DNA of 64,000 bases from Salpingoeca rosetta (GCA_033442325.1 JAWQFM010000021.1:825189-889188); one strand, 5' to 3'. Shown: positions 7,347 to 56,010, numbered from the stretch's first letter. The notes: generated from the letters alone by a model not told the origin. Translations and numbers: made by a program.

Positions 7347-9323
<1,977 letters not shown>

Positions 9324-9326
<3 letters not shown>

Positions 9327-9376
9327 TGATGGTGATGATGATGATGATGATGATGATGATGAGTGATGATGATGGC

Positions 9377-9428
<52 letters not shown>
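9324..9428. repeat. (GAT)n trinucleotide microsatellite starting at the epimerase stop codon
   Basis: Directly visible. Confidence 0.95.
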
Positions 9429-9615
9429 GCGATGGTAATCGGTGGTGGCGGTGATGTTGGGTGCGCGTGTTGTGTTGAGCATTAACTGCGCTGGTGTATT
9501 CGCTTGTAACGAGCCCGCAATCCCCCAACATTAAACAAACAAACACAACACAACACAACACAGCACAACACAACAAACAAACAATAACAAAAAAACAAGA
9601 GGTTTTTGATGATGA

Positions 9616-9913
9616 TTATGATGATGATGATGGCGTTGGTGTTGTGATGGACATGATCTGGTAGCCGCTCCAGCCAAGGAGGATCTTGCGAACCTCCGTG
9701 AACCCAATCCACGCTTTGGGCCGCTGTCCTTTCCTGCAGCGGTCCCACGCAGAGCAACGAGAAAACAAATTGAAGGGAAGAGGGAGGGGGGCAAAGGAGC
9801 GTGGGTTGAGCGCAGCGTACAAACAGAAGTAGCGTGCGTGATGGTGGGAAGCAACAGACCGGAAATATCGTTTACACGAAGGACAATAAACAGAGTCTTT
9901 TACACCAAACAAG

Positions 9914-9965
<52 letters not shown>

Positions 9966-10606
9966 GCGGGCATACGCAGCACCATACACAATCGGGTACG
10001 CAATACAACACGCGTGTACCTTGCAGTGAGAATTTCCCGGACGATGCCGGTATCGTCCTCCCATTCGCGCATCGCATACACGAGTGCATAGTGGTTCGTC
10101 AGATGGAAGAGCAGCACTGGTGATGGCGTGGTGATGGAGGGGTGGAGAAGTGTGAATTGGTCACGTGTGAACGAAAGGATCGATGTCTTTGTTCTCACGT
10201 ACAGACGCAAGTGCAGACACACACACGTACACACGCAAGTGCACACACACACACACACACACGTGCACATACACGCACACACACACACACACAAGATCAC
10301 ACGCACACACACGCACACAATCACACACACCCATACACATTCACAAAAGCACAGAATGCACGCACACATCCACGTAGACAAGCACAAGCACCACCGACCT
10401 GTGTTTGATCTGTTGAACTCCGAGAAGAGGGCACGCCACTGGTCCTCAATCTTCCGCGCATCATCGCGGGTGAGCAGTTTGTGCTGCACCCGCGATCCTT
10501 TCATCGCCTTGCCCATGAACGGCCGGCACTCAAGCACCGTCTGGTGCGTTGGTTGTGTGTATTATGTGAGAGAAGATGATGAGCAAGAGTGACACACACA
10601 CACACA

Positions 10607-10639
<33 letters not shown>

Positions 10640-12982
10640 GCACGCACGCACGCACGCACAATCACACACACGCACCCCTCCCATCCAACTCACATCGTAT
10701 TGTGAAGAGACGGCCTTGCATGCAGACGTGATGCCCCAGTTCCCAAAGTACGCTGTGCTCGGTCGCTCCTTGGTCAGCTTTGCCATACCAATCACCGCAT
10801 TCACATACGCCATCAGCGCCTTCTTCCACTTGGGACTCACAGGCGTTACTGCTAGCTCCTGTGGTGTGGGTTGTGTTGTGTTGTGTTGTGTTGCGTTGTG
10901 TTGTGTGTGTGGGTTGTGTTGTGTTGTGTTGTGTTGTGCGTGTGTGCGTATGAATGTCCGTGAGTTTGTGCCCGTGTGCATGTATGCATGCACACCTCTG
11001 TGTTTGTGTGTTCACAACACACACGCAGATATGAAAGGCCCGGGCATACAAGACGATACAGCAGTTCCATCCCAAACAAATAACACACACACACATACAA
11101 ACACATTCCCTCCCCGACATCACTCACTTCGAGCTCCTCGTTGTGCTGTGCAGTTCCGCCAGTCGACGTTGTTGCTGTGGTGCTGGCAACGTTGTCGCCC
11201 TTTTGCTTCTCACCATCACCACTGCCCTCCTTCTCCTTCTGATCGCCATCATCACCACCCGATTCTTTCGACACGTCTACACACGCTGTCACACGTGACC
11301 CGACTGTGGGCGCATCTTGCTTCTGCTGCTTTTGGGCCGTCGTGACAACCACGTCGACATCATCATCGTCCTCGTCTTCATCGTGATCATCACCACCATC
11401 ATCGTCATCACCTCCATCGATATCCCCACCACCAATGCCGCCCTGGCTCCCGTCCTTGTCACCACTCCCATCTCTGGCCGGTGCGTGCCGCCCATACACA
11501 GTGCGCAGCTGAGCAAACACGCGCTCCGTGTTGCTGACGTCGTCATCAACCAGCTCCCGGATGTGCTGCCACAGTATCTTCTTCTTCTTGCCCTACGGTG
11601 CCATGGGCGGGTGTGTGTAAGAGAGGGAGAGAGGGAGAGAGACAGACAGACAGAAAGACAGACAGACAGACACAGAGAGAGAGAGTGTGTGTGTGTGTGA
11701 GTGGGTTTTGTGTGTGATGACACGATGAGCGACAGTACAAGGTGCATAGCACGTCCACACAAAAGCACACACACACACACACACACACACACTTTTGGGA
11801 ACTTGGTGGCAAAGGACTGGTCGTTTTCTGCCAGTTTCAGCTTGAGCTTTTCCACGAGATCAGATGGGTCCGCGCCAAGCGCGAATGAGCATCTGCATCA
11901 TGCGGAGGAGAATAGGTGGGGTTGCGTGGTGCCTTCAGCGTTTCGTCCACAGGCGACCAGGGCACGCACATGCACACACACATGCATACAGAGCATGCAA
12001 AGCACAAACACGCCACATGCACACGCACGCACGCACACACGCACATGCAATCAAAGCATACACATATACAAAGCACACGCATTAAGCATACCCACCGGCG
12101 ATGGTGCTTGATGACAATGCCGTCCAACACGTTGCGGAACTCCTCAAGGAGATCGTGTTGGGATAGCGCCTGCTCATCATCACGACGCCGACGCGAGAGT
12201 GCATTAAACGCGCCCGCCACAGATGCTGTGACCAGGACACCACCGCAGCAACAAAGCAAATCCAACGACAGTGTCACCACAAGCGAGCAAGTCACAAGCG
12301 AGCAAGTCACAAGCGAGCAAGTCAGGTGGCAACGGTTGATGAGTGGCTGAAAGTGCATACGTACACACATGTGCGTGCTGTTGCGGCACGGCACGTACGC
12401 AAACAACATTCAGAGCCGTTTCAACGACCACAATACGACTAACAACAGCGACAATACACACCAACGCATAAGTCACCGTGCTGTTGTTATTGTTCATGAG
12501 ACACGGTTGGCCGAAGTGTTGTGACGCCATCCCTCACCTGCTGCACAGGCTGGACTGAACTGCTTCACCCAGGAATCGAAGAGCTGCCGGTTGTACGCGA
12601 CACAGAGCCGCCGCTTGTCTGTGGGCATGCTGTCTCCATCGTACAGCAACGCGGTCAAGTCCACTTCTTCAGCAGCATCCGTATCGCGCTGCACAACCGC
12701 AACAAAAACAAAGTTGCACGAATGCGTCAGCACAAGCAGCGGCGACCTCACACACACACACACTCTCTCTCTCACTCTCTCTCTCTCGTTTCGTTTTGGT
12801 TCATACGCTTCATCATCAATGCAACTTGACACCTGACTCACTTCGTACGTGTACTTTTTGCTTGTCGTCGATCCGTCAGCCGCGGCCGTCGCTTCCATCC
12901 TTGCACTCGCCGTCACATCCTTGCGCTCGGCGCCTCCGTTGTTCATCTTTGTTGTCGTTGTCGCCGTTTCGTTGCCGCTCAT
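9616..12982 (-). CDS. Uncharacterised protein with papain-like (BIVM / phytochelatin-synthase / C39-like) motifs
   Basis: About 9 exons (~12982-12842, 12690-12538, 12226-12096, 11893-11793, 11593-11128, 10859-10694, 10541-10400, 10117-10020, 9734-9616) splice in frame. They give KQFSPACAAASVAGAFNAL ... PSTAYFGNWGI ... QWRALFSEFNRSNTVLLFHLTNHYALVYAMREW ... LTARKGQRPKAWIGF. Confidence 0.72.
12279..12324. repeat. Intronic 15-bp tandem repeat ACAAGCGAGCAAGTC x3
   Basis: Directly visible. Confidence 0.85.
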
Positions 12983-37532: not shown

Positions 37533-38673
37533 CACTCGCTCACACGCACACTCGCTCACGCGCACACTCACACACGCGCACACTCACACACCCCTCAAAC
37601 ACAAACACACACTTACACACCTCGACAGCAAACTTGGAAGCGGTGTAGACGGCGTGTGTTGGAGTGAAGCGTACGCCGCACACGGAACTGGTGACCACAA
37701 CCTGACCCGCGTTGCGCTCACGAAAATGCGGCACCACCCGTTGCAACCACAAGAACACACCTTTCACCTGCAGCATCACACGCGCACACACCGTGCACAA
37801 CAACGAAGTCAAAACACGTCTCTTCATCTCACAAAACCCGCACACACACACACACATACTACACACACACACACATACTACACACACACACACACACACA
37901 CGCACACACAAGGCAAGAACGCAGCTGCAGGCACTGCTGCAAAGGGGTTGTGTGTTTACGTTTGTGTTCATGACGCGGTCATAGCCGTCTTCGCTGCAGT
38001 CCTCCAGCTTGCCGCGTTTGACACTGCAGCCTATCACAGCGACAATGCGAGTCATGCGTGTGAGAAAGGAAACGTGTGAGAAAGGAAGAAAGTGGGAGAG
38101 CAAGGAAAGGAGAGAAGTGAAGCGCATGTGGTCGCAAAGCCAAGAGAAACGGGGAAGAAAGCCCGAAAGCATACCATTGACACACGAAGGCTATGTTGCC
38201 ACTTCTCACCAGCGTTGGCAACGAGGGCATCACAGCTGCCACCAAAGTGGGAGAGCGCCTGTGAGAAGTGGTCACTCACAACAGTAGCGTCAGACACGTC
38301 GCCTTGTGCGTAGTGCAGCTTCCCGGCCTCTCCGCCCTTGTTGGCATTGCACTCTGCCGCCAGCTTTTCCATGGCTGCCGCATCGCGCCCTACACGAAAG
38401 CACGCGGAAGCGCGTGTTGTGACATGGCACATGTTGTGATATGGCGCATGTTGTGATTTGACATGGCGCACGTCAAGCGCACACACTTCAGCAACACACT
38501 CACACACAAACACACAAACACATACGCACTTCAACAAACCAACACACAAACACAAACACGAACACACACTTTAACCACTTACCTGTGATAAATACGTGGT
38601 GCCCTTTGCTCACGAGTATGCGCGTGAGCGCTGCACCAACGCCACTCGACCCGCCAGTCACAATCACCTTCAT
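36240..38673 (-). CDS. Short-chain dehydrogenase/reductase (classical SDR), interrupted by assembly gap
   Basis: MKVIVTGGSSGVG (TGxxxGxG), GDVS, LVANAG, TNVKG, TSSVCG, YTASK (YxxxK). Terminal exon 36392-36240 reads ...MLAPEAVAQAIITAIDQHPSSNIERIVLDPTSV*. One internal exon appears to be missing in or near the gap. Confidence 0.88.
36463..36539. repeat. (GA)n microsatellite
   Basis: Directly visible, in an SDR intron. Confidence 0.95.
36588..37342 (+). repeat. Degraded direct copy of 33859-~34597 (CSRNP 3' end and downstream region)
   Basis: Near-identical at first (ctggaaagcgcagaac...gtcccaatgtgtctcaaagac...gtgaagccatgaacactctctcgtcccc), with progressively more mismatches and homopolymer expansions up to the N gap. 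Confidence 0.9.
37343..37442. other. Assembly gap (100 N)
   Basis: Run of exactly 100 N. Confidence 1.
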
Positions 38674-39182
38674 GGCTCACGCTCAACTTTACAGTGGACT
38701 GCACTCAACTCCCACTCGCTCGCCTGCCACACTGGATCACTGCTGGATCGCTGCTGCTTCTTGTTGTTTGTTTGTTGTTGCGCATGGATTGACGCTTGCC
38801 GACGTTTCATGGATATTTTCGTCCAATTTTCACGACTACGCGGCTTGTGGTCTCACTCGCTCGCGTGTGGCTGCAGCCTTTCTTCAGCTCCACTCCTCAG
38901 TCTTCGCGTTGGTGTGTGTCATCACATATCCCCCCCCCCCTTGTCCTCTGTTCTGGGCTTTGTTCTGTCTGTTTGTCTGTCTCCCTCTCTCTCTCTCCCT
39001 CTGTCTTCTCCCTCTGTTCGCTGAATCCAACCGCTTTGGTCTTGTCGGCCGACAACCAGACGACAACCAGACCAACCAACCAACTCATTCAACAACGGAC
39101 ACGCGCTGTTCAAATCACAACCTGCACGCACACATCCACACATTCAACAACGACAACAAGCAGTCCGACCATAACCACCACC

Positions 39183-39335
39183 ATGGTTCGCACGGACGTG
39201 ACCATCCTCTACAACGTGACGCGTCCAAAGGATGGTGTGTTTCTTTTTGCTTGCACACATACGGACGTAGCAAACACGAAACAGCGTTCACACAACAAGT
39301 TCTCTTGGGACACATTTCGCCTGTATGCCTGCTTC

Positions 39336-39368
<33 letters not shown>

Positions 39369-42300
39369 TCACTCACTCACGCACACACACTCTCTCTAAC
39401 TCACACACGAACGCACCCACACATCCCCCATCCCCCAACACATACACACACACACACACTGCACGCACACACACTCTCTCTAACTCACACACGAACGCAC
39501 CCACACATCCCCCATCCCCCAACACATACACACACACACACACTGCCACGACAGCCTTGGACGAAACGCAGTCGCTTGTGACGGCGCTGCGCCGGCGGTG
39601 GATATCGGCGTGTGTGAGGGAGGTGCAGCCGGAAACGCACGACGCAGACGCCCTCGACGCGGCCATCAGGGACTCCAAGATCGTCATCCTGATCGGCGCT
39701 GTCGTGGGCTCCGTCAGCCGCGAAGCCACCCTCGTCACGCTGCAACGCATGCAGCACATCCTCGCAGCAAACAAGCACCTCCTTGTCATCAAGGTCTTCC
39801 AGCATGACCGCTACCCGTTTTCGGAAACAATCTGGCCGCAGCTGTCCCGCAAAGCTATAGCCGCAGCCCTGTGCGACATGTACAGCCTATCCCCGCCTCT
39901 GCAGCGCGTGTGCGACGCCCTGCACCAGCGCGACGTGCATGCCAACCTGCCTGAGCTGCAGCAGCAGCAGCACGACAAGGTCAAGGCCGCGGGCACGACA
40001 ATCGGCAGCTTGCTCGAGGGCTCCGTCTACATTGACTCATCCAAGCCGGACCGCGACAAGAAGGGGCGGCTCAAGGGGCTCGGCCGAACGCGAAGCACAA
40101 GCACCATCGTCATCCCAGACCGCATGCCGCACATGCCCAACGCCACGCTCGTGCTTCCCCAACTGATGCCGCCAAGCCCCGCGTCCGCAGAGGCTGTTCC
40201 CCGCGAGGTGATTGGCCGGCTGCTGCTGCCACTGCGAGGTATCAAGCTGGCCGAACCAACATGGCTGCCGCGCGCGGCGTTACATATGGGTGCCCATGAT
40301 GGCGCGGGCGGTGTTGCCGAGGACTGCATGGTGGATCTGACCACGCTTAACAGCTACACCCCGACGTCGGTGTCTGCCGCCGCTGCTGCCGCCGCATCTG
40401 CAAAACACAGCGCGTCTTCGCAGCGCTCATCCAAGAAGAAGCAGCAGAAGAAGCAGAAGAAAGGCAAGTCCTCTTCCTCCTCTGCTGCCTCAACCACATC
40501 ATCATCATCATCATCATCATCACCACCATCGTCATCATCATCGTCGTCGTCATCATCGTCAATGGCCACGTCCACCGCCCAGCCGTCGCTGCCTGCGCGA
40601 CCCCCCAAGTCGCCCTCGCTCATATCGCAGCTGTCCATGACGGGTGCGTCTCCACTCGCGCTGCTGGGCACCACTGGCCGCGCCAGCGACAAGATGCCAA
40701 ACACAAAGATTGTGCCCACGGCGCTCGTGGTGCTGGACGCGCTTGCGTCGCAGTTGACAGACGAGGGCAGGCTGCCGGCCGCCATCAAGCTGCCGCTGTA
40801 CGCACTGCCCAGCAGCCGACTGGTGGCGCTGGTGTCCAGCCGCCCAAAGGACAGCCTGCTGTGCCAGCGCGTGTTCCTGCTGCTTGCGGACCGGGCCGCA
40901 AAGGCCAACAGCGAGGCAGAGGAGCTGCTGCGGTGCGGCGCCATCAAAGCCGTTGTCGACGCCCTCGAGCGCAACCACAAGGCGGACACGGCCGTGCACG
41001 TGTGTGCTTGCCACCTCCTCTCCTGCGTGTGCATTGGCCTGGACGACGACGAGCGCGTGCACGACGTTGGGGCGGAGGGCGCCGCCTTCTCCGTCATTGC
41101 ATGCATGCAAGCAAGCCCCGACAACGAGGCCGTGCAGCTGGCCGGCTGCCAGGCGCTGAAGAGCATCACGTCGTCCTTTGACAACGCGCGCTACGTGGTG
41201 GGCGGCGACGGCGTGGAGGCTCTGATGGACGCCATGAGGCGCCACCCAGACTGCGCCCGCATCCAGGCCGAGGCGTGCCTGGCGCTGGGTGCCGTGTGTG
41301 AGAGTGGGGAGGACATGTGCGCGCGTGTGGTGTCCAAGGGCGCGCTCGACAGCGTCATGCGCGTGTTCAAGCAGTACAAGGCGGACCCGCTTGTGCTCGA
41401 GTGCGCGTGCGTGGTCATCACCCGCTTTGCCATGGGCACCCCGCTGTGCGCTCACCTGGTCAACGCCAACGTGACACCCGTGCTCGTGCAGACCATTCGC
41501 CGCCACAAGCAGCACGCGAGCCTTGCCTTCCAGGCAACCATGGCACTGCTGGTCATGGGCATGTCACTGGACGGGGAGAGGGTGCACAGGTTCCTGGCCT
41601 CCGCTGGCGCCGTGGACGTGATGGCCGCGCTCATGTGCCTGCACCCGGGCCACGACATTCTGCAGTCATTTGCCTGCAGCCTGCTCTGCCTGGTTGGCAG
41701 GCAGCCCACGGTAATGCAGCGGGTGCTTGAGCTGGGCGTGGTGGACCTCACCGCCGACGCCCTCAAGAACCACCCCGAGTCCTTTGACGTGCAGTCCCGC
41801 GCGTGCGAGTTCCTGGAGCTGCTCATCACGGTGAAGACGGAGGCAGCACTGGACATTCTGCACGAGCGCGACGTGCCCGCAGCGCTCGTGCGCGCCCTCG
41901 CCCTCCACTCGGACAAGGCGGACGTGCTTGAGTTTGTGCTGGGCGCCATTGGGTCCATGGCCCTGCGTCACGCCAAGTGCCTGCAGCGGTTCTCCGAGCT
42001 CAACGCCCAGGCCGCCGTGCTTGCATGCATGCTCGCTATGCAGGAGGACGAGACAGTTGCGCGGCGGGGGTCGTGGGCGCTGCTGAGCCTGTCCCTCAAC
42101 CGGGACGACAGCGTGGTGACGCTGATTGAGAAGGGCGCCTCCAAGCTGCTGCTGGGCGTGCTGGTGCGCCACTCGACGCTGGAGGAGGCCGTCATCCCCG
42201 CCATCAACCTGCTCATCCTCATTGCGGAGCGCAGCCTGCTTGAGCGCGACAACATGCTGCGCATGGGCGTAGTCGGCTTTGTGGTCACGGCCCTGCGTGC

Positions 42301-43135
42301 ACTTCGCAACGTAGACCAGCTTCAGCTGTGTGGCGTGCAGCTGCTCACCGCGCTCAGCGGCGACCCGCACAAGGTGGTGGCGGGCCTCCTGCGCCACAAG
42401 CAAGGCATGGACTTGATTGTCGCATGCACGGCTGCGGCCATGGGCAACGCGGAGATGCTGGGGCCCGTGTGCGGCCTGCTCGATGCGCTTGCGTGCGCCG
42501 ACCCGTTCGTGGAGGCGTACGCTGCCACGGGCGGCGTCATCACCGTGCTGTGCTTTCTCCGCGTCAACCCGACGGACGCCACCGTCAACTACCAGGCGCT
42601 GCGCATGCTCACGGCCATCCTGCGCACCACCCCCAAGCAGCGCGAGATCGTGCTTGCCCACCGCGGTCTTGAGACTGTGCATACCGCAGCCAAGCGGTTT
42701 GACGGGCACCCAGACGTGCAGCTGCAGGCGTGCGTGACGCTGCTATACCTCACAACGAATAACCCGACCCCGCTGCAGCTGCGCACCCAGCTCATTGACC
42801 TCGTCCGAGACTACGATGACAACGACAATGCGCAGGCTGATGTTGGAGACGAGCGTGCCGTTGCAGCCGAGGCGAAGGAAGGTGTGGCTGCGAACAAGGG
42901 CGCACAACATGCGGAGACAGCGGAGACAGACGCCACTGATGGTGATGCTGCTGCTAGTGCTGCAGAGAAGGAAGGCAGCGGCGATGAAGATGAGGTTATC
43001 AACTGGCATGCTGTGCGCCAGGATGCGTTGCAGTGGGCAAAGAAGGTGCTGCAAGCGCACAAGGCCAACGACCGCCACCTCATTGCCATCCGACGCTGCA
43101 TTTCCACATCAACGCCTGACCTTGTTCTGGGTTGA
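39183..43135 (+). CDS. Armadillo-repeat protein with N-terminal degenerate TIR-like domain
   Basis: Exons 39183-39234 and 39555-43135 join in phase 1. The N-terminus reads DVTILY...ALRRRWIS...AIRDSKIVILIG...NKHLLVIKV, then an S/K-rich linker, then many ~42-aa ARM repeats (GAIKAVVDALERNH..VHVCACHLL; GVEALMDAMRRHP..IQAEACLALG). ARM is confident; TIR is moderate. Confidence 0.82.
39379..39546. repeat. Intronic direct duplication of an ~84-bp CA-rich unit containing a CTAAC branch-point-like motif
   Basis: acgcacacacactctctctaactcacacacgaacgcacccacacatcccccatcccccaacacatac... occurs twice before the 39554 acceptor. Confidence 0.85.
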
Positions 43136-43859: not shown

Positions 43860-43936
43860 ATGCATTGCCGCTCGCCCCTGGTCATCAGCACCGCCCTGCT
43901 GGTGACCATTTTGGCGCTGTTGTCCCCGCCCGCCAC

Positions 43937-44006
<70 letters not shown>

Positions 44007-44016
44007 CTGTGTGTGG

Positions 44017-44054
<38 letters not shown>

Positions 44055-46074
44055 CTGTGTGGTCATGAGTTTTGTGAGCTTCTTTCTAGTTGAACAGCAA
44101 CCTGTGCTGGTCCGTGGCTGGGTTCAAGTGTGTACCGTGTCGCAAACACAATCCCACAAACACAGACACACGCGATGTACACTCACACTCGCATTTCCCC
44201 TTCCACTCGACATGATTCTCTTCTCCTCTTCCAGCGATTGTGGATATCCCGCGCTTCTTTTCCGAAGCCACTCCGCACTCAACCCTCACTCAAGCAGGCA
44301 CATATCCAAGCCTGAAAGGTGACGTGGTCAACTCAAACGATGCCGCAACCTTGTCCATGTCTGCATGGATGCGCGCCTCTTTTTCCACCAATACCGGCGG
44401 CACCCAGGTGTGTGTTTCCGTGTGTTTGTGTGTGTATGTGTGTATGTGTGTATGTGTGTGGGTGTGGGTATATCTGTATGTTTTGGGCTTGACTTTGTGT
44501 CTTGTGTGCAACTTCTCTGTCCCTTGTCCTTTGGGCTCTTCCGCTTAAGATTCCTTCTTTTGTTCGATCTTTCCTACACTGGGCTTACATGCAAATGCCA
44601 TGCATGCCTATACTATCAAATGATCCCCCGATGCTTTCAAACCCGCCATATCCTACACAACAACACAGTTGCTGTGGGATGTTGGCAGCAGCGTGACGGG
44701 CGTATCGCTCGTGTACACGGCCACCAACACCGTGCGGGCCACCATGTGCAGCGCCGGCCAGGTGATACTTGCCCTCGAACACAACATCACCGCATCACAC
44801 CTGGACGCGGGTGCGAACGTGGACGTCGTGTTCTCGCTCGACCGCCGTACGGACGGCGTGGTGAACCAGACTGCGCGCCTGCGTGTAGGCGACGAGGAGC
44901 ACGTGGCTGTCGTCGACATGACCCCACTGTGGAGCGATAGCGACGCAACCGCGTTTCTGGCGCCCATGTCCAGCAACATCTGCACCGGTTCTGCTGGTGC
45001 TGTCGTTGACTTTGCCGACGGTCAGGCGGACCTGGACCTTGGCCTCAACATCTATACCAACTGGTTCTACTTTGACAAGCCCGTGACAGGAGGTCGGTAC
45101 ACTGCAGCGGTGCATGCGCTCAACCAGGCACGGGGGAGTGCTGGTGTTTCACCCCCACAAAGCCCACACTGGCACGTGCAAGCACACCAACACACAAGGG
45201 TACACACACACACACACATAGACAAGAGTACACTCAACATAACAGCATACACACGCAAACAAGAGTACACACACACACATAGACAAGAGTACACTCAACA
45301 TAACAGCATACACACGCACACGCACACACACGCACACACACGCACACATCTCTTGACCGTGCTCATTGCATCACAATGCTCCCAAACCCCCTCCTCCACC
45401 GCGGTGCCTGTTCAGACTGGTACAGCACGGACCGGCCCCGCGCCCAGTTTGGCATCCCACCCGATCTGCAGTACTTGGAGGCGGGCGACTACGCCAGCAT
45501 CAACGACGAGTCATTCAACGGCAAGCAGAACGCCGACGTTGCTCCCATCACGTTCTACGTGTCTGTGCAGCTGCACCCGAAATACCTCAACGTGGACGGC
45601 TCACCTCCCTCGCCGGAGGTGCTGATTGAGATTGGCGGGCACAAGGTTGGCCTGTCGCTGTTCTACGCCGCGCCGCACACACTCGTGCTCAACAAGTGCG
45701 GCGGTTCCATCACGATTGTGTACGAGGTGCCGGAGGAGCTCACAGGCACCGGCGACAGCACGCCGTTCCTGGATATCATGTTTGGACGCGATTTCAGCGA
45801 CAACCTCTTTCTTGTTGTCAACGGAGAGGCAGTGCCGCCTGTTGCGCTCGGCGCTGCGAATGATATTGCGGGCACAGACCGGTCGGGCGTGCTGCAGATT
45901 GTCAAGAACTACTGCAATGGTGATGGAAGCTACGTCAACTCGCGCAACGAGGGCGTTGAGTTCACCAGCGGCACGGTGGACTGGAACATTGGCTTCAGCT
46001 TGTGGGTGGAGGAGGTCTACGACCCCGCCCTCACTACCGATCCATGTACGCGCTCGCGAGCTCGATTGCTTACT

Positions 46075-46108
<34 letters not shown>

Positions 46109-48587
46109 TGTGTGTGTGTGTGTGCGTGTGTGTGCGTGTGTGTGTGTGTGAATGTGTGTGAATGTGTGCGTGAAGGTGTTTGTGCTTGTGCGTGTGCGGT
46201 GTGCTTGTGAGCATGTGCGTTTGTGGTCGTGTCGAGTGCTGCGTTGCTGTGGTGACAACCCCACATACTTGTGACATTATGCCAAGGCGAACACCCTCAC
46301 CCCCATGAACAACTAACACCCTCACCCCCTTGAACAACTTTCATCCACCACCACCACCGCCACCGCCACGACCACCACCCACATCTCGCCGCCGTTCCCA
46401 TCTTCGGTCTTTGCGCGCGCATGATCAGCAATCTGCCAGCACGGCGTAATCCTGACGAAGCACTCGACAGGCCTGGCCTACTGCTCCTGTCTGCCTGGTT
46501 TTGGCGGGATGCGGTGCGATGAGGAGGATTTGTCCACTCTTCCCGCCACGTGCTACGAGTCAGAGGCGCCGTTGACGACAGGACCGCAGCTGCTTCGCCC
46601 AAACCCAACAGCATCGCCCATTGCCCTCTACTGTGACATGGACTACTGGTGTGTGTGTATGTTGTTGTGTGTGTATGTGGGCGTGTGTGTGTGTGCGTTC
46701 GTGTGCGTGCGTGCATGTGCGTGTGCGTGTGCGTGTGTGTTCGCTTTGAAGGGGCGCGCGTGTTTTTGTTGGCGTTGCAGAGGAATAAGGGGCGAATGGA
46801 CGAAGCACCACACCGGGTTGCTTTGTCGATTGCGTGGCCGATCACATGAAGCGTGCCCGCTCAATCACACACACACACACACACACATACACACTCACAT
46901 GCACACGCACACATATGCACATGCACACACATGCACATGCACGCACACACACCAGGGGAGGCGGCAACACGATGTGCGGCAAGTTCCTGCGGGACAACAC
47001 TGTAGGAAAGCAGTTCCTTGACAGCGATTTTGGTCGTGTAACGAGTGATGATGCAGGCTCCTACGACCTGTCCTCCCTGGCCAACTCTGCTTCCACCGGG
47101 TACCAGGCGTCCCATGTGAGTCCCAACGGCTGTTTTGCTTGCAGGAGAATAGGGAGCAGGTGGCACCTGCAGCCACTGTGACGTGTTCATTGTGCGGCTT
47201 GTTCATGCTGCACCTTCTTGAAATGAAGACGAAGAATAACGACAACAGCTACAACAGCTGCAACAACAACCCACACTGCTGCTCTCACCACAACCACCAT
47301 CACCACCACTATCATCACCACCACTATCACCACGATCACCATCACCCCAGGATTGCCGCCATCTGATTGAGGGGCGCGAGCAGGGTGTTTTTATGAACGC
47401 CGGCAGCGACAAGGACGGCAGCAGCATGATGGACGCGGTGCTGTTCACCACCATCCTCCCAGAGGTGCTGCGCAATGCCAGCAGTCTCCTCGACGTGCGC
47501 CAGCGACCCGACGCGCTCGTTGGCGACGTCGGGTGCCAGGCAGGTGTGTTGGATGTGTTCACGGCTGATGGCGAGGCGGCCACGACTTTGTACCCGTTTG
47601 ACCTCACCGGTGCCGCCCTTGTCAACACCAGCACCATGTGGGTCAACTACGCCAAGGACGGTACGCGCAGACACCATGTCTAAGTCAACGTGTGCGTGTG
47701 CGTGCATGTGTACGTGTGTGTATGTGGGAAAGTGTGTGTGTGCGTGTGTGTGCGCGTATGTGGGTATAGTTTGGAGTGTGCGCGCGACTCTGTGTACATG
47801 TATGTATGTATGTCAGTGGTTGCTGCATCGCCTGTATGCACACAACAATCAGCTGCATGTTCTTGGTAATTCCCGCACGATGTCACGCTTGCATGTGCAA
47901 ATGACAAACCTGCATATCTCGTGCATGTTCTTTAGGTGCAATCATGTCAGCGTCCGCCACTGACTCGTGCATGGTAAAGCCGACACATGAGCGCAACTTT
48001 GATGCGTGTGCAACGCATCGTCTGCACTGTTTCTGACATGTATCGTTTTCTGTTGCACGGTCTATGTGTCTGTGTGCGTAAGTGCGTGTATTTGCTCGTG
48101 CGTGGCTGTATCTGTGACTGCATGCGATATGTACCCTGAGCCTTCGCTGACCTCACTCCAACTGTCCGACGCCTTGTTCGTCCTTCATACCATGCATACC
48201 ATTCACATCACCGTGCCACGTTCCACCCTTTTCCTTACATCTGTCTCTCACCATCACACAACCGTATGCGCTGTTGCGCGAACACAGGACACGGGCGAGA
48301 ACTTGGTGTTCTGGGGCTTTGAGGATGCAAGCGGCCGTGTGCCCAACTATCGCTGCAGTTCGCAGGGTGTGGTCACCATTGGCACATACTGTGGCGCAGC
48401 CAGCGCCCCCAGCTTCAGGTGCGGGTTTTGTGTGTGCGTGTGTGTGTGTGCGTGTGTGTGTGTGCGTGTGTGTATGTGTGTGTGTGTGTGTGGGTGCGTG
48501 GGTGCGTGGGTGTGGATGTGTGTGTACGTGTGTGTGGATGTGTGTGTACGTGTGTGTGTGTGTGGGTGCGTGGGTGCGTGGGTGTGG

Positions 48588-48628
<41 letters not shown>

Positions 48629-49201
48629 TTCACGTTTATGCACGAGTCGGTGAGAAGTGCAGGGCGACACTTTGAATGCACCTTGCCATTTTGCGCGCGG
48701 AGTTGTACCATCTTCGAGAACTTTTCGTCTCTTTACTGCAATTCCCTCTCACACCACCACGACCACCACCACCACTTATACCGTGTTCAGGAACAACTAC
48801 CTGCTGGTGAAAGCGACGCCGCCAGCGCGGGATCAGGTGAAGGCGCTGATTGGCGAGGCAGACTGGACGCTGCGCTCGTTTGGTGCAGCCACCAGCACAC
48901 CCACTGCGTTCAGGCAGCAGTCAGCCACGTTGGAGGTGGTGACCAACTTTCTCAAGGTGCCTGTGGGCCAGAGCGAGCTCATCTTCACGGTGGGCACGGC
49001 CAGCAACGGTGTTACGGTTGCATACGCGGCCCCATACAACCTCCAGCTCTTCTTCTGCGCCGACAGCGTCACCCAACGTGAGGCACAACCAAGGGCTGTG
49101 GCAGGCTCACTGCTTGCTCCATTCCAACGTGCATGCATGTAACCATGCATTGAAAAGGCGCTTCTTTTACGTCCGCAATCAATGTGTTCTTCACTAACTC
49201 G

Positions 49202-49242
<41 letters not shown>

Positions 49243-52200
49243 TGCTCACGCACACACATTTGCTCACACACACACACATTTGCTCACACACACTCACACG
49301 CACACACATTTGCTCACACACACACACACACATTCGCCCACACGCGCGCACGCAGAGGAAACGTTTCGGTTGCACGACTTCCACATTACGGGTGGACAGC
49401 AGAGCTTGGCCCTGTCTTTACTCAAGCAGACAAACGCGTACGCCGTTGTTCTCTACGTGGACTTTGTCCCCGTTGCAGTCACGGGCGCTGTGGTGTCCAA
49501 CGGGCAGTGGGCAGGCAGCGACAGCATAAGTTTCTTCAGCACCGCATCCGGTGTGTGTGGAGGAACCTTCCGGGCCCCAGTGTCACAGCGCGTGAACCCT
49601 CTTCGTGGCCTGCGCATGTGGACGGGCAAGGCATTTTCCAACGAGGACCGGTGCGCGCTGACAAACGCGTGCTTCAACGGCGGCACGTGCCTCAACGGCT
49701 GGTACGACCCGCCGCTGTGCGAGTGCGCCCCTGGTTTCACGGGGCCGGCGTGCGCGGATGACATTGACGAGTGCGCGTCGCCGAGCCTGAACAACTGCCA
49801 CAAGTACGCCGACTGCGAAAACGTGCCGTCCACGTTCACCTGCCGCTGCAAGTTTGGCTTCACGGGCAACGGCACGCACTGCATCGATGTCACCGACCCG
49901 GCCATCACGTGCCCGGCGTCTGTGGTGTCGACGGACGTGTTTATCAGCTGGAGCAGCCCCAACGCCACAGACAACGTGGACGACGGCGTGAGCGTTTCGT
50001 GCGACACTAGGCCGCAGACGTTTCCCATTGGCACAACGGCTGTCACGTGCACGGCTACGGACGCAGCAGGCAACCAGGCGCAGTGCAGCTTTGACGTGAC
50101 TCGACTGGATGCGCAGCCACCCGTGTTTCCAGAGTGCCCCGCGGCGATGGTGGTGGGCACTGACCGGTTCTCAAACAAGCACACGCTCTCCTATGCTGTT
50201 CCGCTTGCCATTGACAACCACATTCCCAACGTGCCAGTGACGTGCACGCCCGAACCGGGCGAGGACGTGGCAATTGGCACCACGAGCGTCACGTGCGTTG
50301 CCGACGACGGAAGGAATCGGGCGTTCTGCAGCTTCAGCATCACTGTGGAGGACCAAGAGCCGCCGCTCCTCAGCTGTCCTGGTGATGTGCAGACGACGGC
50401 GCCACCGGGAGCCACCAGCGTCAACACCATTGCCCTGCCCAACCCAACGGCCCTTGATGCTGTGGACAACGACCCGAGCAGCCTCGACGTCTCGTGCAAT
50501 GCAACCGCGAACCAGCCTTTCCTGGTCGGCTACACCGTGGTCGAGTGCTCGGCGGAGGACACGAGCGGCAACAGGGCGACGTGCACGTTTGAGGTTGTTG
50601 TGCGCGACGAGACAAACCCGACAGTCACATGCCCTGCAAACATGGGCGTGGCCACGGACGCCGGCATGCCAACCGCAGTGGTGGACACGGTGTCGCTGCT
50701 GACGGCATCCGACAACGGACGCATTGCGCGCAAGGCGTGCACGTGGGACGCCAGCACGCCCATGCCCATTGGCAGCAACACGGTGACGTGCGAGGTGGAG
50801 GACGAGTTTGCCAACAGCGCGTCCTGCTCCTTCACCGTGACGGTGAGCGATGCGGAGCCACCCGTGATTGTGTGCAGCAACAACGTGACGGTAAGCACGG
50901 AGGTCAGCGTTGCGGACGCCGCTGTCACCTTTGGGCTGCCGAGTGTGAGCGACAACTCTGGCCGCGTGGCCTCTGTCAGCTGTGACACGCCAACGCAAGG
51001 GCGCTTTGGTATTGGCGAGACGATCGTACGCTGCTCTGCGCGTGATGTCGCCGGCAACAGCGCCTCGTGTGCGCTCAGCATCAGCGTGATGGATACAGAG
51101 CCACCTGCACTCGGGTGTCCGCCTGCGATGTCGGTGTCCACAGACGCTGGTCTGAGCACGGCCGCCATTGAGTTTGCACCCACCGCAAGCGACAACAGTG
51201 GTATGTCGGTGGCCATCAACTGCACAGTGCCTTCGCCGGCCGACCTTGGCGTGGGGGCGTACGCCGTTGCCTGCAGTGCTGCGGATGTGTCTGGCAACAG
51301 GGCGACGTGCACGTTTGACGTTGTTGTGTTTGACGAGGAGCCGCCGGTGCTGTCGTGCCCCGACTCGCTGCAGCTCAAGGCCCCAGGCAATGCCACGTCC
51401 GTTGTTGCCAACTGGACTACTGTGGCTGCCGCAGACAACAGCGGAGAGCCCGTCACTGTGACATGCTCGCACAACGTTGGCGACGCCCTGAACGTGAGCG
51501 TGCACCACGTGGACTGCAGCGCAAGGGACGCGTACGGCAACACGGACGAATGCGCGTTTGTGGTGACCGTTCAATCGGACCTGGCGCCGACGGTGACATG
51601 CCCCAACGACATTGTCACCCAGACGTCGCTTGGCACGTCTGTGGCCGTGGTGCGCTGGGCTGATGCCGCCACTGCCGTGGACAACGCCGATGCGACGCTG
51701 CCCACACGATGCTTTCCACCAGCGGGCCGGCGCTTCGAGATTGGCGCGCACTTTCCATACTGCATGGCGGTGGACGCCAGCAGCAGGGTGGGCTACTGCT
51801 CCTTCAAGGTGACGGTGTTGGATGTGGAACCGCCCGTGTGGGAGTGCCCGGACCACATCACCATCACGACGGCGAGAAACGAGAGTTACGGTGTTCTCAA
51901 CGCCACCACGCCGACTGTCAGCGACAACTCGGGCCAGGTGGTGGCGCAGTCGTGCACACACGCGCACGGGGATTTGCTGCCTTTCGGCGACACGACGAGG
52001 CGGTGCGAGGCAGCCGACCCTTCTGGAAACAGGGCGGTGTGCAACACGACCATCACGGTGGTTGATGCGCAGCCCCCGTCCATCACATTTCTTCAACCGG
52101 ACCTGGTCGTGGAGACCAAGTTCCGGGAAAGCTACGCCGTGGTGGTGCTGCCTGATCCCGTGGCGTGGGACAACGTTGGTGTGACGCGCGTGAGCTGCAA

Positions 52201-55200
52201 CGCCAGCTCCGGTGCATTTGCCATTGGCGTGCACCACGTGCGCTGCGAGGCGGAGGACGCGGCTGGCAACACCAACGCTGGACAATACCGCGTCACCGTC
52301 GTTGATGTGGAGCCACCGGTGCTGACCTGTCCCCAATCCAGGGTGGTGGTCGTGAGGGCGGGACCGGGTGGTGATGTCGACGGCGACAGCGCGTTTTACC
52401 TCAGCACAACCTCGCCTGTCACAACGACAGATGTCAGAACAGCACCCGTGATACCAACGACACCCACTGCTGGCATGACCATGCCAGGCCTTGCGACCAT
52501 GAATGTCAGCGCATCCAAGACTGCGACCAGCACCGCAGCAACATCAACGACAACGACAACAACGACAACAACGGAGAGCGAACCGTCTGCAGCTGCAAAG
52601 TCCCGCAGCAGACGTGAAACGTCTCGGACGGGTGAAGACAACACGCTCACGCTGTTGCTTGTGGGCACGCGGGAGTTGTTCACAGTGTATTATGGTGACA
52701 ACAGTGACAGCGACAGGCAAGCGGCGAGCATCACCATCTCCTGCGTGGTTGTGGACGGCTCACCTGCCCTTGGTGTGGGTAACGTGACACGGGTGCAATG
52801 CAGTGGCGTGGATGCGTCCATGAACGAGGCATCCTGCTCCTTCCTGATTGCTGTGCAGACGGCGGACGCGCCAGAACTCGCCTGTGACGGGCCCGTGACA
52901 GTGGTGGCAGTAGACGGCACAGCAGCGCCCGTTTCTGTGCAGGCGCCAGTGCAGACGAGGGCATCAGAACCTCTGGCACTGAGCGTGGCGGAGTGCGTGC
53001 TGCCGGCAAGCAGCGAGCTGCCTGTTGGGGAGCACGACGTGGTCTGCTTTGGGAAGGTGGTTGACCTTGTGCCGGCAACCTCCTCCGCCGCTCCAACAAC
53101 TGCAGCGCCAGCGAGTGATGACGACGACACTGCTGTCGGCACCAGCACCAACAGCGACGGCGACGACGATGATGACTATGATCATGTTGCGTCTGCACCC
53201 ACGACTCTGCCAGCAACATCAGAGTCGTTTATTGGCTTCTGCTTCTCACGTGTGTATGTGCTTGAGGCGACACCGCCGGACATTGAGTGCCCCTCCGATG
53301 TGCGAGTGGCTCTGCCATCTACACCGCTTGCACAAACGGCTGCTGTGGTCTTGTTGGACCCCGCTGCATCCGACAACGAGGGCCTGGCTGGCGTGTCATG
53401 CAGCGAGCCCAACATTGCGTCGTTCCCCGCGGGGCGTCACACAGTCAACTGCACGGCTGTGGATGTGTATGGCAACCGCGCCACGTGCGGCTACACGGTG
53501 ACGGTGATTGATGAGCACCCGCCTGTGCTGGAGTGCCCGACGCTCGTCTCGACGACCGTCTCTCGTCTCACGGAGGCAGCCGTTGCAGTGGACATTGGGA
53601 TCATCGAGGCACGCGACAACACGGGTGCAACATTCAGCACCGCTGACAGCAGCAGCAACGGCGGCGGTGACGGTCTCGTTGGCGACTTGGTTGTGGCCTG
53701 CAGTGCACCCGCTGGCGGCCGCTTCCCCGTCGGACAACGCACGGAGGTGACGTGCACCTCGACAGATGCAGCCGGCAACACGGGCACATGCGCATTTGCG
53801 GTCGAGGTTGGCGTGGACTGCATTGGCCAGTGGTCGGAGTGGGTGTGCGAGCGCTGCCCAAACAGGGTGGAGCACCGGGCGTTCCAAGTGAGCGCCTTCC
53901 CAGTCCTGGGTGGGGCCGCGTGTCCGGGAGAGCAGCAGCGAGCGTGTGTCGATGCAGAACCATGCTTCTTCCTGCGCACGTCCTTGGTGATCGGGCCCGT
54001 CCTGGACATTGATGCGGCCATGGGGCCACTTCGTGCAGACTTGGTCGCGTTCTTGACCGATGTCCTACCGCAGATTGCGCGCGTGTATGGGGTTGAGTAT
54101 GACGAGGCGATGGCGTCAATGACCATTGAGGGCGTTTTCGCCACATCCGCCCCCACACCAGCCGTCACCATCAGCGACACGACCGATGCCAGCATCAGCA
54201 ACAGCAACAGCGCCAACACCGTGGACGACGACGGCGCTGGTGATGCTGCGGCGAACGGGATGCGCCGAAGAAGCAGTGATGACGATGACGACGATGGTGG
54301 CAGTGCTGGTGATGATGACGGCAGCATTGCGGAGGTTGTCAAGGACCACTTGAAGGTGTCTGTGCTGATTGACGCTGAGCGGACGCCTGCACTGGCAATG
54401 CTTGATGCACTTGAGGCGACAATGAGCGACAGCAGCAACACGGCGGCGGTGGCGGCAAATGAGGTGTTGGCGATCCTGCGCGCGGGCGACCCCGAAGATG
54501 TGTTCGAGGACGTATCCGTGGCGGTGTTCACCAGCGTGACGGCGCAGTCTGTACTTGAGACCACGAGCACAACAGTCTTGACGACATCCAACACCCCGAC
54601 AACCGTTGGGTCCAGAACTGAAACGTCACTGCAGGCGCAGGTACCGCTCATTGCAGGGGTGTGTGCCGCTGCGCTCATCCTCGTCGTCCTGATTGTGGGC
54701 GCGGTTCTGGTGCGCTTGAGGAAGGACGAACCAATTGTGCTGGCGCGTCGCAGTCCGTCCACGCGGCGACACCGCACCAGCACGCTCAAGCGCAGTGACA
54801 TTATCAAGATCAGAGGCCTGCATCATGAGGAGGAGGCGGAGTACCTCGAGATGAACACCCTCAACAACCCGGTGCGTGTTTGGTTGGGCGTGTAACTGCG
54901 CACACGTGCATGTGTGCTGGTGTGTGTGTGTGCACCTGCGCTTTCAAGTGTTGGTGTATCTGCGTTTGTGTACGTGTTGGTGTGCATTTGCGCGCATGTG
55001 TGTTGGTGAATCTGCGTGTTTGCGTTGGTGATTTGGTGCGTAGCGCTTGTATGTGTGTTGGCGTGTGGTGAATTGCTGCTTTGCTGTAGTGTCCATGGGT
55101 CAAACAATGGCATGTACCTATGTACACCCCACAGGTTGGTTTGAAACTGTCTCACAACTCCAACTCACCACCAACGTGTTTCTTCCGTTTCGTTCGCCAA

Positions 55201-56010
55201 CAACAGCTGTACGACAGCAAGGACGGCACCAACGGCAGCGATGGTGAAGAGGAGGAGGACTTGTATGATGTGGTGCGCGCACCCAACGCATCGGATACGT
55301 CAAGTGACGACGATGACGACATCATGGGCAAGGACATGTTTGACTTCGCTGGGGATGAGGATGAGGAGGACGCCGATGATGGTTTCGGTCTCTTTGGCGG
55401 CACTGTGGAGCGCAATGACTACAGCAGTGCGAATAACATGCCAGTGGAGGAGATGAGCGATGATGATTTGGATGCGCAAGTGGACATGGACATGGTCGCT
55501 GCGTTTGAGCGCCGTGATCCGCTGGGCTTGTCCGCGAACAAGAACCGCAACAGCAGCTACGGCGGCGACAGTGGCGATGATGATGATGATTATGATGACA
55601 ATGATGGCGATGGCGATGACGAGGAGGACATCTCGGGCCTGTTTGGGTTTGGGCAGCAGGATCCCATTGTTGCCGATCTGATGGACGGGCTCATGTCATC
55701 GGAGAAGATGATCAACCACCGCAAGATCCAGAACCTCGAGGAGAAGAACAGGGAGTTGCAGCGGCAATTGTCCATGTACACATCCCAGCAGCCCTCACCC
55801 ATGCGCGGTGCATCGCTCACAGAAGGTCCCGTGATGACAAGCACACCTGTGCCTGTTGGCGTTGCTGATGACGACAAGAACGCGCCGTCGCGTGTGTCCG
55901 TGGAGCGACCGGCAACGCTGTGGATGGACGATGGCGATGGCGATGGCGATGATGATGTGGTGCCGCCTGGTGGTGTTGAGACGAGTGCAGACGAGTGGCT
56001 GCCAAGGTAG
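43860..56010 (+). CDS. Giant type I membrane adhesion/receptor protein: SP, LamG-like x3, EGF x3, fibrinogen-like, HYR x14, TSP1-like, TM, acidic Tyr-motif tail
   Basis: Exons ~43860-43938, 44298-44408, 44669-45144, 45417-46045, 46430-46648, 46956-47115, 47351-47660, 48288-48418, 48792-49077, 49356-54871, ~55207-56010. Signal peptide [15 protein letters not shown]; [12 protein letters not shown] (FBG/NEC-type); [16 protein letters not shown] and DIDECAS (cbEGF); 14 D..PP...CP...C.A.D..GN...C.F.V HYR units; [15 protein letters not shown]; [24 protein letters not shown]. Confidence 0.88.

Follow-up and report, generated by a model that had tools for sequence, protein, structure and literature searches.

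The stretch of DNA considered here (hereafter the window) comprises 64,000 nucleotides of Salpingoeca rosetta (GCA_033442325.1, JAWQFM010000021.1:825189-889188), and its positions 43860-56007 on the + strand hold a single 12-exon gene for a predicted surface receptor, whose head shows the same order of folds as the middle part of the animal junction protein Caspr (CNTNAP, Neurexin IV). The gene corresponds to a public model (P0001, 2923 amino acids) that a word search returned at 100% identity to the large last exon and that bears the uninformative name "epidermal growth factor [Salpingoeca rosetta]". Mapped back onto the window, this model aligned with zero mismatches in 12 exons (43860-43938, 44235-44407, 44669-45092, 45416-46045, 46429-46648, 46956-47115, 47351-47660, 47936-47973, 48288-48418, 48791-49077, 49356-54871 and 55207-56007), and all of its 11 spliceosomal introns are of the GT..AG kind. 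The same splicing underlies a preliminary description of this DNA, which had been made from the sequence alone. The gene is transcribed: stranded raw reads of two 2026 RNA-seq runs span the exons and leave the introns uncovered, on a single strand, and support five junctions (45092>45416, 46045>46429, 47660>47936, 47973>48288, and 49077>49356), two of which flank a micro-exon of only 38 nucleotides (47936-47973). A loose RNA end at 44232 bears the end of exon 1, and three further junctions (44407>44669, 46648>46956, and 47115>47351) that fall below the listing threshold in the RNA-seq data are backed by the depth pattern, by a confident predicted fold across them and by homologues that are contiguous over the same positions. 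Owing to the CA/GT dinucleotide repeats with which the introns are packed, and which yield long spurious open frames, a mechanical list of open reading frames breaks the gene up, as the preliminary description had also remarked.

The product is, as predicted from its sequence, a type I surface membrane protein in which a long Ig-like stalk carries a head of lectin folds. It starts with a signal peptide (amino acids 1-26, encoded by exon 1 at 43860..43938, +, which begins with an ATG at 43860, encodes a hydrophobic leader and is followed by a GT donor at 43939, in agreement with P0001), followed by two jelly-roll units, a four-cysteine EGF-like module, a fibrinogen-related domain (FReD) of 264 amino acids, a third jelly-roll unit, an EGF and a calcium-binding EGF; beyond these lie 13 HYR domains and, further on, a transmembrane helix and then an acidic tail. 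The motifs on which the preliminary description had built its reading all lie on the + strand as stated there: LLWDVGSS opens exon 3 (44669), the motifs quoted for the other two units fall in exons 4 and 10, and exon 5 encodes the CQHG...GMRC module and PATCYE...LYCDMDYW, with the GGG carried on into exon 6. The order of folds in the head, i.e., LamG-like twice, EGF, FReD, LamG-like and EGF, is thus real, as are the folds that the preliminary description had proposed for a Caspr-like cassette. Of the two origins that it had left as options, the convergent one is the more probable, and ancestry shared with Caspr is not supported (see below).

The three jelly-roll units are encoded on the + strand at 44235..45447 (unit 1, amino acids 27-236; exons 2, 3 and the start of exon 4), 45448..46044 (unit 2, amino acids 237-435; exon 4) and 48825..49639 (unit 3, amino acids 734-912; exon 10 and the start of exon 11). 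That they are mutually similar, as had been noticed by eye, was borne out, at a weak but significant level, by pairwise BLASTP comparisons (E 2e-5 for units 1 and 2, 6e-5 for units 2 and 3, and 1e-4 for units 1 and 3), and with phmmer all three found one common set of outside homologues and matched identical segments in them. Unit 3 is also 27% identical to the third unit of a Monosiga brevicollis protein (P0002, XP_001745979), and the phmmer matches of unit 1 include bacterial regions that are borderline for Laminin_G_3 (P0017:690-845 and P0012:708-863). Unit 2 was modelled with AlphaFold2 on the basis of a 25-row alignment of the unit family (A2), with good confidence (predicted local distance difference test score 85.7, predicted template modelling score 0.84). 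On this model it is a jelly roll of the concanavalin A (ConA)-like/LamG type: the top Foldseek matches (E 5e-7 to 3e-5) are a sialidase CBM40, a clostridial-neurotoxin lectin-like jelly roll (i.e., the N-terminal one of the neurotoxin binding region), the pentraxin PTX3 and the LG5 domain of laminin alpha2, while VIA-align gave a Z of 14.2 to the CBM40 domain of NanB (169 amino acids, root-mean-square deviation 3.3) and of about 12.5-13 to the clostridial toxin jelly roll. Laminin_G_3/CBM40 lectin domains as a whole, e.g., those of NanB and NanC, the toxin jelly roll and the pentraxins, resemble unit 2 at Z 12.3-14.2 over 160-170 residues; no LG domain is found among its best 50 VIA-align matches. 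For units 1 and 3 the same kind of fold, which the preliminary description had assigned to all three, is suggested by homology to unit 2 and by the relatives that they share.

Domain profiles agree with this picture only at their margins. Four of the 25 aligned relatives match Laminin_G_3 (PF13385) at or near threshold, the best with 28.8 bits against a cut-off of 27.6; the S. rosetta units themselves reach no Pfam threshold for this family, and neither P0001 nor any of the 25 aligned relatives has a match to Laminin_G_1 or Laminin_G_2. As canonical Laminin_G_2 (PF02210) is found above its threshold elsewhere in the S. rosetta genome, at six other loci, the lack of Laminin_G_1/2 here does not reflect a general divergence of choanoflagellate sequences. 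Searched against the sequences of the PDB, the unit profile (A2) found nothing significant (best E 0.24), and the ConA-like assignment therefore rests on the predicted fold and on the borderline Laminin_G_3 matches of the relatives.

Between units 2 and 3, the preliminary description had placed an EGF that runs directly into a fibrinogen-type start. The position is right, i.e., amino acids 436-469 (46045..46529, +, with the intron in between and the start of exon 5 at 46429-46529), and this module leads directly into the PATC... start of the FReD. As an EGF it is reduced to four cysteines and, in S. rosetta, matches Pfam only faintly (EGF_DL_JAG, E 0.16); homologues score better at the same position (EGF_Teneurin, E 4e-5 and 6e-5). 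The EGFs past unit 3 (amino acids 917-948 and, for the calcium-binding one, 953-993; 49652..49882, +) are as had been described, and their assignment is straightforward, with Pfam scores over the thresholds (EGF 1.1e-10 and 42 bits, EGF_3 7e-9, EGF_CA 4.9e-7 and 30.3 bits) and a match to an EGF of Notch1 in the PDB (9.5e-14).

The fibrinogen-type start turned out to open a complete domain of the FReD superfamily (amino acids 470-733; 46530..48824, +, exons 5-10, including the micro-exon), which is, according to its predicted structure, of a divergent, intelectin-like "YCDxxxxGGGW" type, with intelectins and a bacterial family as its closest counterparts. A 22-row alignment of the family (A1), used for profile searches and for the AlphaFold2 model, outlines a domain of ca. 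250 amino acids with conserved cysteines, the motifs GGGWTLCGKFDRDN, DCR, W.W and GTGC, and a terminal RYN strand; the S. rosetta copy of the N-terminal subdomain reads YCDMDYWGGGNT and has GGGNT in place of GGGWT. The first ~46 residues of the family correspond to the NCBIfam model NF040941, "fibrinogen-like YCDxxxxGGGW domain" (GGGWT_bact), for which, at a cut-off of 30 bits, bacterial members score 49-112, M. brevicollis 31.9 and S. rosetta 18.4 (E 0.0016), i.e., below the cut-off. Against the PDB, the A1 profile matched XEEL/intelectin (7e-10), fibrinogen beta (1e-8), and further MFAP4, tenascin, ficolins and angiopoietins (1e-6 to 1e-5 for tenascin, ficolin and angiopoietin), always over the first ~65 positions only, which form the N-terminal subdomain. 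Homologues likewise match Pfam Fibrinogen_C (PF00147) only at profile positions ~4-58, P0001 has no match to it, and an exon-wise search found nothing for PF00147 anywhere in the S. rosetta genome.

Structure extends this likeness to the whole domain. The AlphaFold2 model is confident (predicted local distance difference test score 85.4, predicted template modelling score 0.88), every top Foldseek match is a FReD, and VIA-align placed intelectin-1 first (Z 11.1, 204 amino acids, root-mean-square deviation 3.9), followed by XEEL (11.0) and lamprey LSVL (10.2), with ficolins, angiopoietins, FIBCD1 and tenascin at about Z 8. In a wide structural search of 48,161 representative PDB chains, independent of Foldseek, a Z of at least 5 was reached by FReDs only (ITLN1 10.8; FGL1, ANGPTL3, H-ficolin and fibrinogen chains 6.8-8.3), and the next fold was the procollagen C-propeptide (Z 3.6). 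The best cluster in the ESM Atlas is "Intelectin-1a-like" (template modelling score 0.62), ahead of Myxococcota proteins with DUF4215 and Fibrinogen_C (0.58-0.59). Owing to weak COLFI matches at the starts of homologues, COLFI was also considered for the YCDM domain, and it was ruled out by the Z of 3.6 to the procollagen C-propeptide versus 7-11 to FReDs.

Two groups of proteins are therefore worth comparing with this FReD. The intelectins or X-type lectins (human ITLN1, Xenopus XEEL, and lamprey LSVL) are its best structural match (Z 10.2-11.1 over 204-217 residues, 2-3 Z units ahead), although identity is 9-14% and likeness in sequence is limited to the first ~65 positions; they are secreted oligomers, whereas the S. 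rosetta FReD is embedded in a predicted membrane receptor. With bacterial YCDxxxxGGGW proteins (NF040941; Myxococcota MopE/DUF4215 and TSP3-repeat proteins) the whole ~250-amino-acid domain aligns at 24-33% identity, and the cysteines, TLCGK, DCR, W.W and the terminal RYN are shared, in keeping with the Atlas scores given above; the bacterial domain is usually C-terminal, behind cysteine-rich or TSP3 repeats, and the S. rosetta copy is divergent. A full FReD is encoded in the S. rosetta genome by this gene only. Two further loci match the N-terminal YCD...GGGW subdomain alone (C5:2169675-2169791, -, E 6e-5, and C24:582675-582833, +, E 8e-5); they sit in open frames of 613 and 746 amino acids and may encode further divergent FReD-type or COLFI-type proteins.

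A HMMER search of amino acids 27-912 against 1.84 billion cluster representatives (E<=1e-3) returned 44 proteins, i.e., P0001 itself and 43 others. The best relative is the M. brevicollis protein P0002 (E 4e-32), another choanoflagellate, Diaphanoeca grandis, is present with one protein (P0016), and several metagenomic matches carry Sushi or EGF modules. The remaining characterised matches are of bacterial type, i.e., a protein from a Myxococcales metagenome-assembled genome (MAG; P0004), MopE-repeat and TSP3_bac-repeat proteins, and proteins of Proteobacteria MAGs; the characterised set leaves out about a dozen short matches (98-557 amino acids) as well as P0014, P0021 and P0022, which the FReD tree alone places with the bacterial P0009. 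Among the characterised members of the 43, none has the domain set of Caspr or neurexin. The Myxococcales protein (MCA9564771.1) carries a canonical Fibrinogen_C (E 9e-22) and then, in tandem, a divergent GGGWT-type domain, and the canonical and the divergent types therefore coexist in one bacterial protein. The D. grandis protein forms, with P0033 and P0039, a well-supported subgroup of the FReD family with a short insertion ahead of GWTLCGKYDRD; in these short proteins the FReD-like domain is C-terminal to Sushi/CCP, and choanoflagellates therefore use it in more than one architecture.

Judged by sequence, the cassette is a conserved choanoflagellate gene family, and at least one other lineage has it together with the HYR stalk. 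In M. brevicollis (locus L013, CH991551.1), all parts of the cassette lie collinear on one strand: a unit at 7866-8264, a unit at 8439-9044, EGF and FReD at 9290-10637, a unit at 10855-11466, and an EGF. The FReD positions 3-249 of the profile are found there in five pieces, in collinear order in the DNA; the public M. brevicollis model (P0002) skips several of these exons, keeping ~125 residues, and probably also lacks the start of the first unit. An environmental contig (L014, 5.9 kb, GC 0.62) encodes two units, a FReD in three frames, a third unit, EGF, EGF_CA and at least seven HYR domains up to the end of the contig, and a second one (L017) two units and the start of a FReD. A protein-language-model search gave leads only, all below its 0.9 level: phage proteins with Laminin_G_3 at 0.87, a cluster of arthropod LamG_1/2+EGF proteins at 0.85 and, at 0.82, a bacterial cluster that takes its name from the YCDxxxxGGGW domain and in which 48% of the members have Laminin_G_3. 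The FReD family tree, which is unrooted, keeps a group of bacterial members (81/74) apart from one of Sushi-linked and Diaphanoeca sequences (96/94), and the S. rosetta branch is long, attaches to another long one and lies outside the bacterial group; no direction of any transfer between bacteria and choanoflagellates can be read from it.

The Caspr ectodomain consists of a discoidin domain, two LamG, an EGF, a fibrinogen domain, a LamG, an EGF and a LamG (PMC10084454). Like it, P0001 belongs to a type I membrane protein with LamG-like, LamG-like, EGF, fibrinogen-related, LamG-like and EGF modules, i.e., the S. rosetta head has the middle six folds of Caspr in the same order, a genuine and rather striking parallel, and the FReD that Caspr has between EGF1 and LamG3 is matched at the level of the fold only. 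Beyond this the two differ. In P0001 there is no N-terminal discoidin domain (F5_F8_type_C has no match in Pfam even at E<=10) and unit 1 starts right after the signal peptide; Caspr has four LamG domains versus three units, none of which is Laminin_G_1/2 by Pfam; the FReD is not Fibrinogen_C by Pfam; and, where Caspr has its second EGF, LamG4 and then the membrane, S. rosetta has EGF, EGF_CA and 13 HYR past unit 3. Pfam searches of the head, exon by exon and on the joined P0001, found no Laminin_G, Fibrinogen_C or discoidin domain, phmmer of amino acids 1-1020 against the PDB found EGF matches only, and no sequence kinship to Caspr, CNTNAP or neurexin was detectable among the characterised HMMER matches. 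The kinship that the preliminary description had considered is thus not borne out: as far as sequence allows us to judge, the domains side with bacterial and intelectin-type families, a grouping away from Caspr that the preliminary description had itself named as speaking for independent shuffling. SVEP1-type animal mosaics also combine HYR, EGF or calcium-binding EGF and a ConA-like (pentraxin) domain in one large extracellular protein, as P0001 does, but in another order, with CCP and VWA domains and without a FReD.

Given that the detectable relatives of the module families appear to be choanoflagellate and bacterial, and not animal LamG or FBG, we consider that the Caspr-like order of folds arose by independent domain shuffling and is convergent, a reading to which we would assign a probability of roughly 0.7. 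The same features argue against common descent: P0001 has no discoidin domain and no fourth LamG, its units are not Laminin_G_1/2, its FReD belongs with the intelectin/bacterial type, none of the characterised HMMER matches is Caspr- or neurexin-like, and both module families have significant bacterial relatives. A pre-metazoan homologue of Caspr/Neurexin IV would have the cassette and the animal CNTNAP core derive from one ancestral receptor gene, with the discoidin and fourth LamG domains either gained in animals or lost here and the HYR stalk gained in choanoflagellates. This agrees with the six consecutive domains in the same fold order, with the type I membrane topology, with the conservation of the cassette in at least two choanoflagellate species, which makes it old, and with the animal LamG_1/2+EGF clusters (0.85 and 0.80, both below 0.9 and leads only) of the protein-language-model search; we nevertheless regard it as improbable, as Pfam finds no Laminin_G_1/2, Fibrinogen_C or F5_F8_type_C in a genome where Laminin_G_2 is readily found elsewhere, the characterised matches from 1.84 billion representatives include no Caspr- or neurexin-like protein, unit 2 is nearest to CBM40 and the toxin lectin-like jelly roll and not to LG, the FReD is nearer to intelectin and Myxococcota FReDs than to classical FBG, and there are three units versus four and no discoidin. 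Were common descent nevertheless true, the septate/paranodal junction scaffold would have an ancestor of unicellular grade, in which the FReD would still have been an intelectin/bacterial-type lectin.

Less improbable, yet in our view still the unlikelier course of events, is horizontal transfer, i.e., that the head modules, or the pair of unit and FReD, passed from bacteria to a choanoflagellate ancestor and were then joined to eukaryotic EGF and HYR domains. Choanoflagellates eat bacteria, every characterised relative outside choanoflagellates is bacterial (TSP3_bac and MopE-repeat proteins, Myxococcales and Proteobacteria MAGs), and the Atlas has the bacterial YCDxxxxGGGW cluster with its 48% of Laminin_G_3 members (0.82, a lead only); against this, the FReD tree gives separate bacterial and Sushi-linked/Diaphanoeca groups, with S. 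rosetta on a long branch that does not fall within bacteria and no root, a transfer in the opposite direction, from eukaryotes to bacteria, or a common origin in the distant past would fit equally well, and the gene has 11 spliceosomal introns. That the cassette is an artefact of chance similarities, or of a wrong model stitched together from intronic frames, might be suggested by the absence of a Pfam match in any single head exon and by the spurious frames of the CA/GT repeats, and it is already refuted by the five junctions and the exon-limited, strand-specific RNA-seq coverage, by the two AlphaFold2 models, both confident across exon joins, and by homologues that are contiguous over the same positions and orthologous loci that are collinear. 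Several points weigh against the convergent shuffling that we favor. The coincidence with Caspr spans six consecutive folds, and a FReD flanked by an EGF and a LamG-like domain is not known as a typical arrangement outside Caspr; common ancestry, if deep, may have faded beyond what sequence comparison can detect. The rows of the FReD tree are members of the family itself, with no Caspr, neurexin or intelectin sequences included, and of the three units only unit 2 was folded. The glycan binding proposed below is taken from fold neighbors only, and the S. rosetta FReD is changed at several residues that are conserved in the family (A1), so that loss of a binding site is possible.

The HYR stalk that the preliminary description had mounted under the head is well founded: PF02494 matches 13 stretches, over threshold, with E 4.7e-128 and 418 bits, and these make up, together with Ser/Thr-rich and acidic linkers, the region 49886..53590 (+; the end is approximate). 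At 52400-53300, in exon 11, the array is broken by Thr/Ser-rich and Asp-rich low-complexity linkers of mucin-like appearance, and GC (0.62-0.64) is richer there than the window average. A weak Cys/Trp-rich candidate for a TSP1-like module at 53819..53965 (+; TSP1_spondin, E 0.59 only) is not established. A transmembrane helix of 24 hydrophobic residues followed by basic ones (amino acids 2580-2603; 54641..54712, +) agrees with a receptor of type I and leads to a cytoplasmic tail encoded by the end of exon 11 and by exon 12 (54713..56007, +, exon 12 being 55207-56007). The tail has 320 amino acids, with 82 Asp and Glu and seven Tyr (e.g., YLEM and YDVV), and matches no Pfam family; the tail of the M. 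brevicollis orthologue is also Tyr-rich. Caspr tails have a 4.1-binding (GNP) motif and, in some members, a PDZ ligand.

The ligands of intelectins, ficolins, FIBCD1, CBM40 and pentraxins are carbohydrates or acetyl groups. By analogy with these fold neighbors, the head of P0001 most likely binds glycans, and it may recognize those on bacterial prey or in the extracellular matrix of S. rosetta itself. Three jelly rolls and one FReD could give multivalency, the stalk, with its HYR domains and mucin-like linkers, would carry the head clear of the glycocalyx and away from the membrane, and a signal might pass via the acidic tail with its seven tyrosines; phosphotyrosine signalling by the tail, to which these tyrosines and the Tyr-rich tail in M. 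brevicollis point, is speculation.

FReD and intelectin-type lectin domains are mostly discussed as modules of animal innate immunity, and Caspr mostly as an animal junction protein. Here, a complete domain of the FReD superfamily occurs in choanoflagellates, within a conserved receptor head that copies the fold order of Caspr and whose kin in sequence appear to be bacterial. The receptor combines uncatalogued subfamilies of ConA-like and FReD domains, the component kinds of which are known, and our search of the literature returned nothing published on either choanoflagellate FReDs or this S. rosetta gene. It offers a testable case for animal-like extracellular architectures that arise without common descent, as lectin modules are shuffled again and again, and in S. 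rosetta, the main model choanoflagellate, it is a candidate for a receptor of glycans on prey or in the matrix; for M. brevicollis, the comparison also reveals that the public gene model misses several exons of the FReD.

Within the introns, CA-rich stretches at 44145-44173, 45202-45224, 46187-46209 and 48752-48776 attract high-depth matches from many unrelated transcript contigs, along with reads in the opposite orientation, and these reads and contigs go on into sequence that does not match. Two apparent variants, 46204 C>T and 48080-48081 AA>GT, fall in such places, and the matches of two Logan contigs (X4 and X6) to the gene are confined to short CA-rich intronic stretches. The four stretches look like dispersed short repeats common to other loci rather than expression of the introns. 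Upstream of the gene, at 38585-43135 (+), a single open frame encodes a putative long armadillo-type repeat protein.

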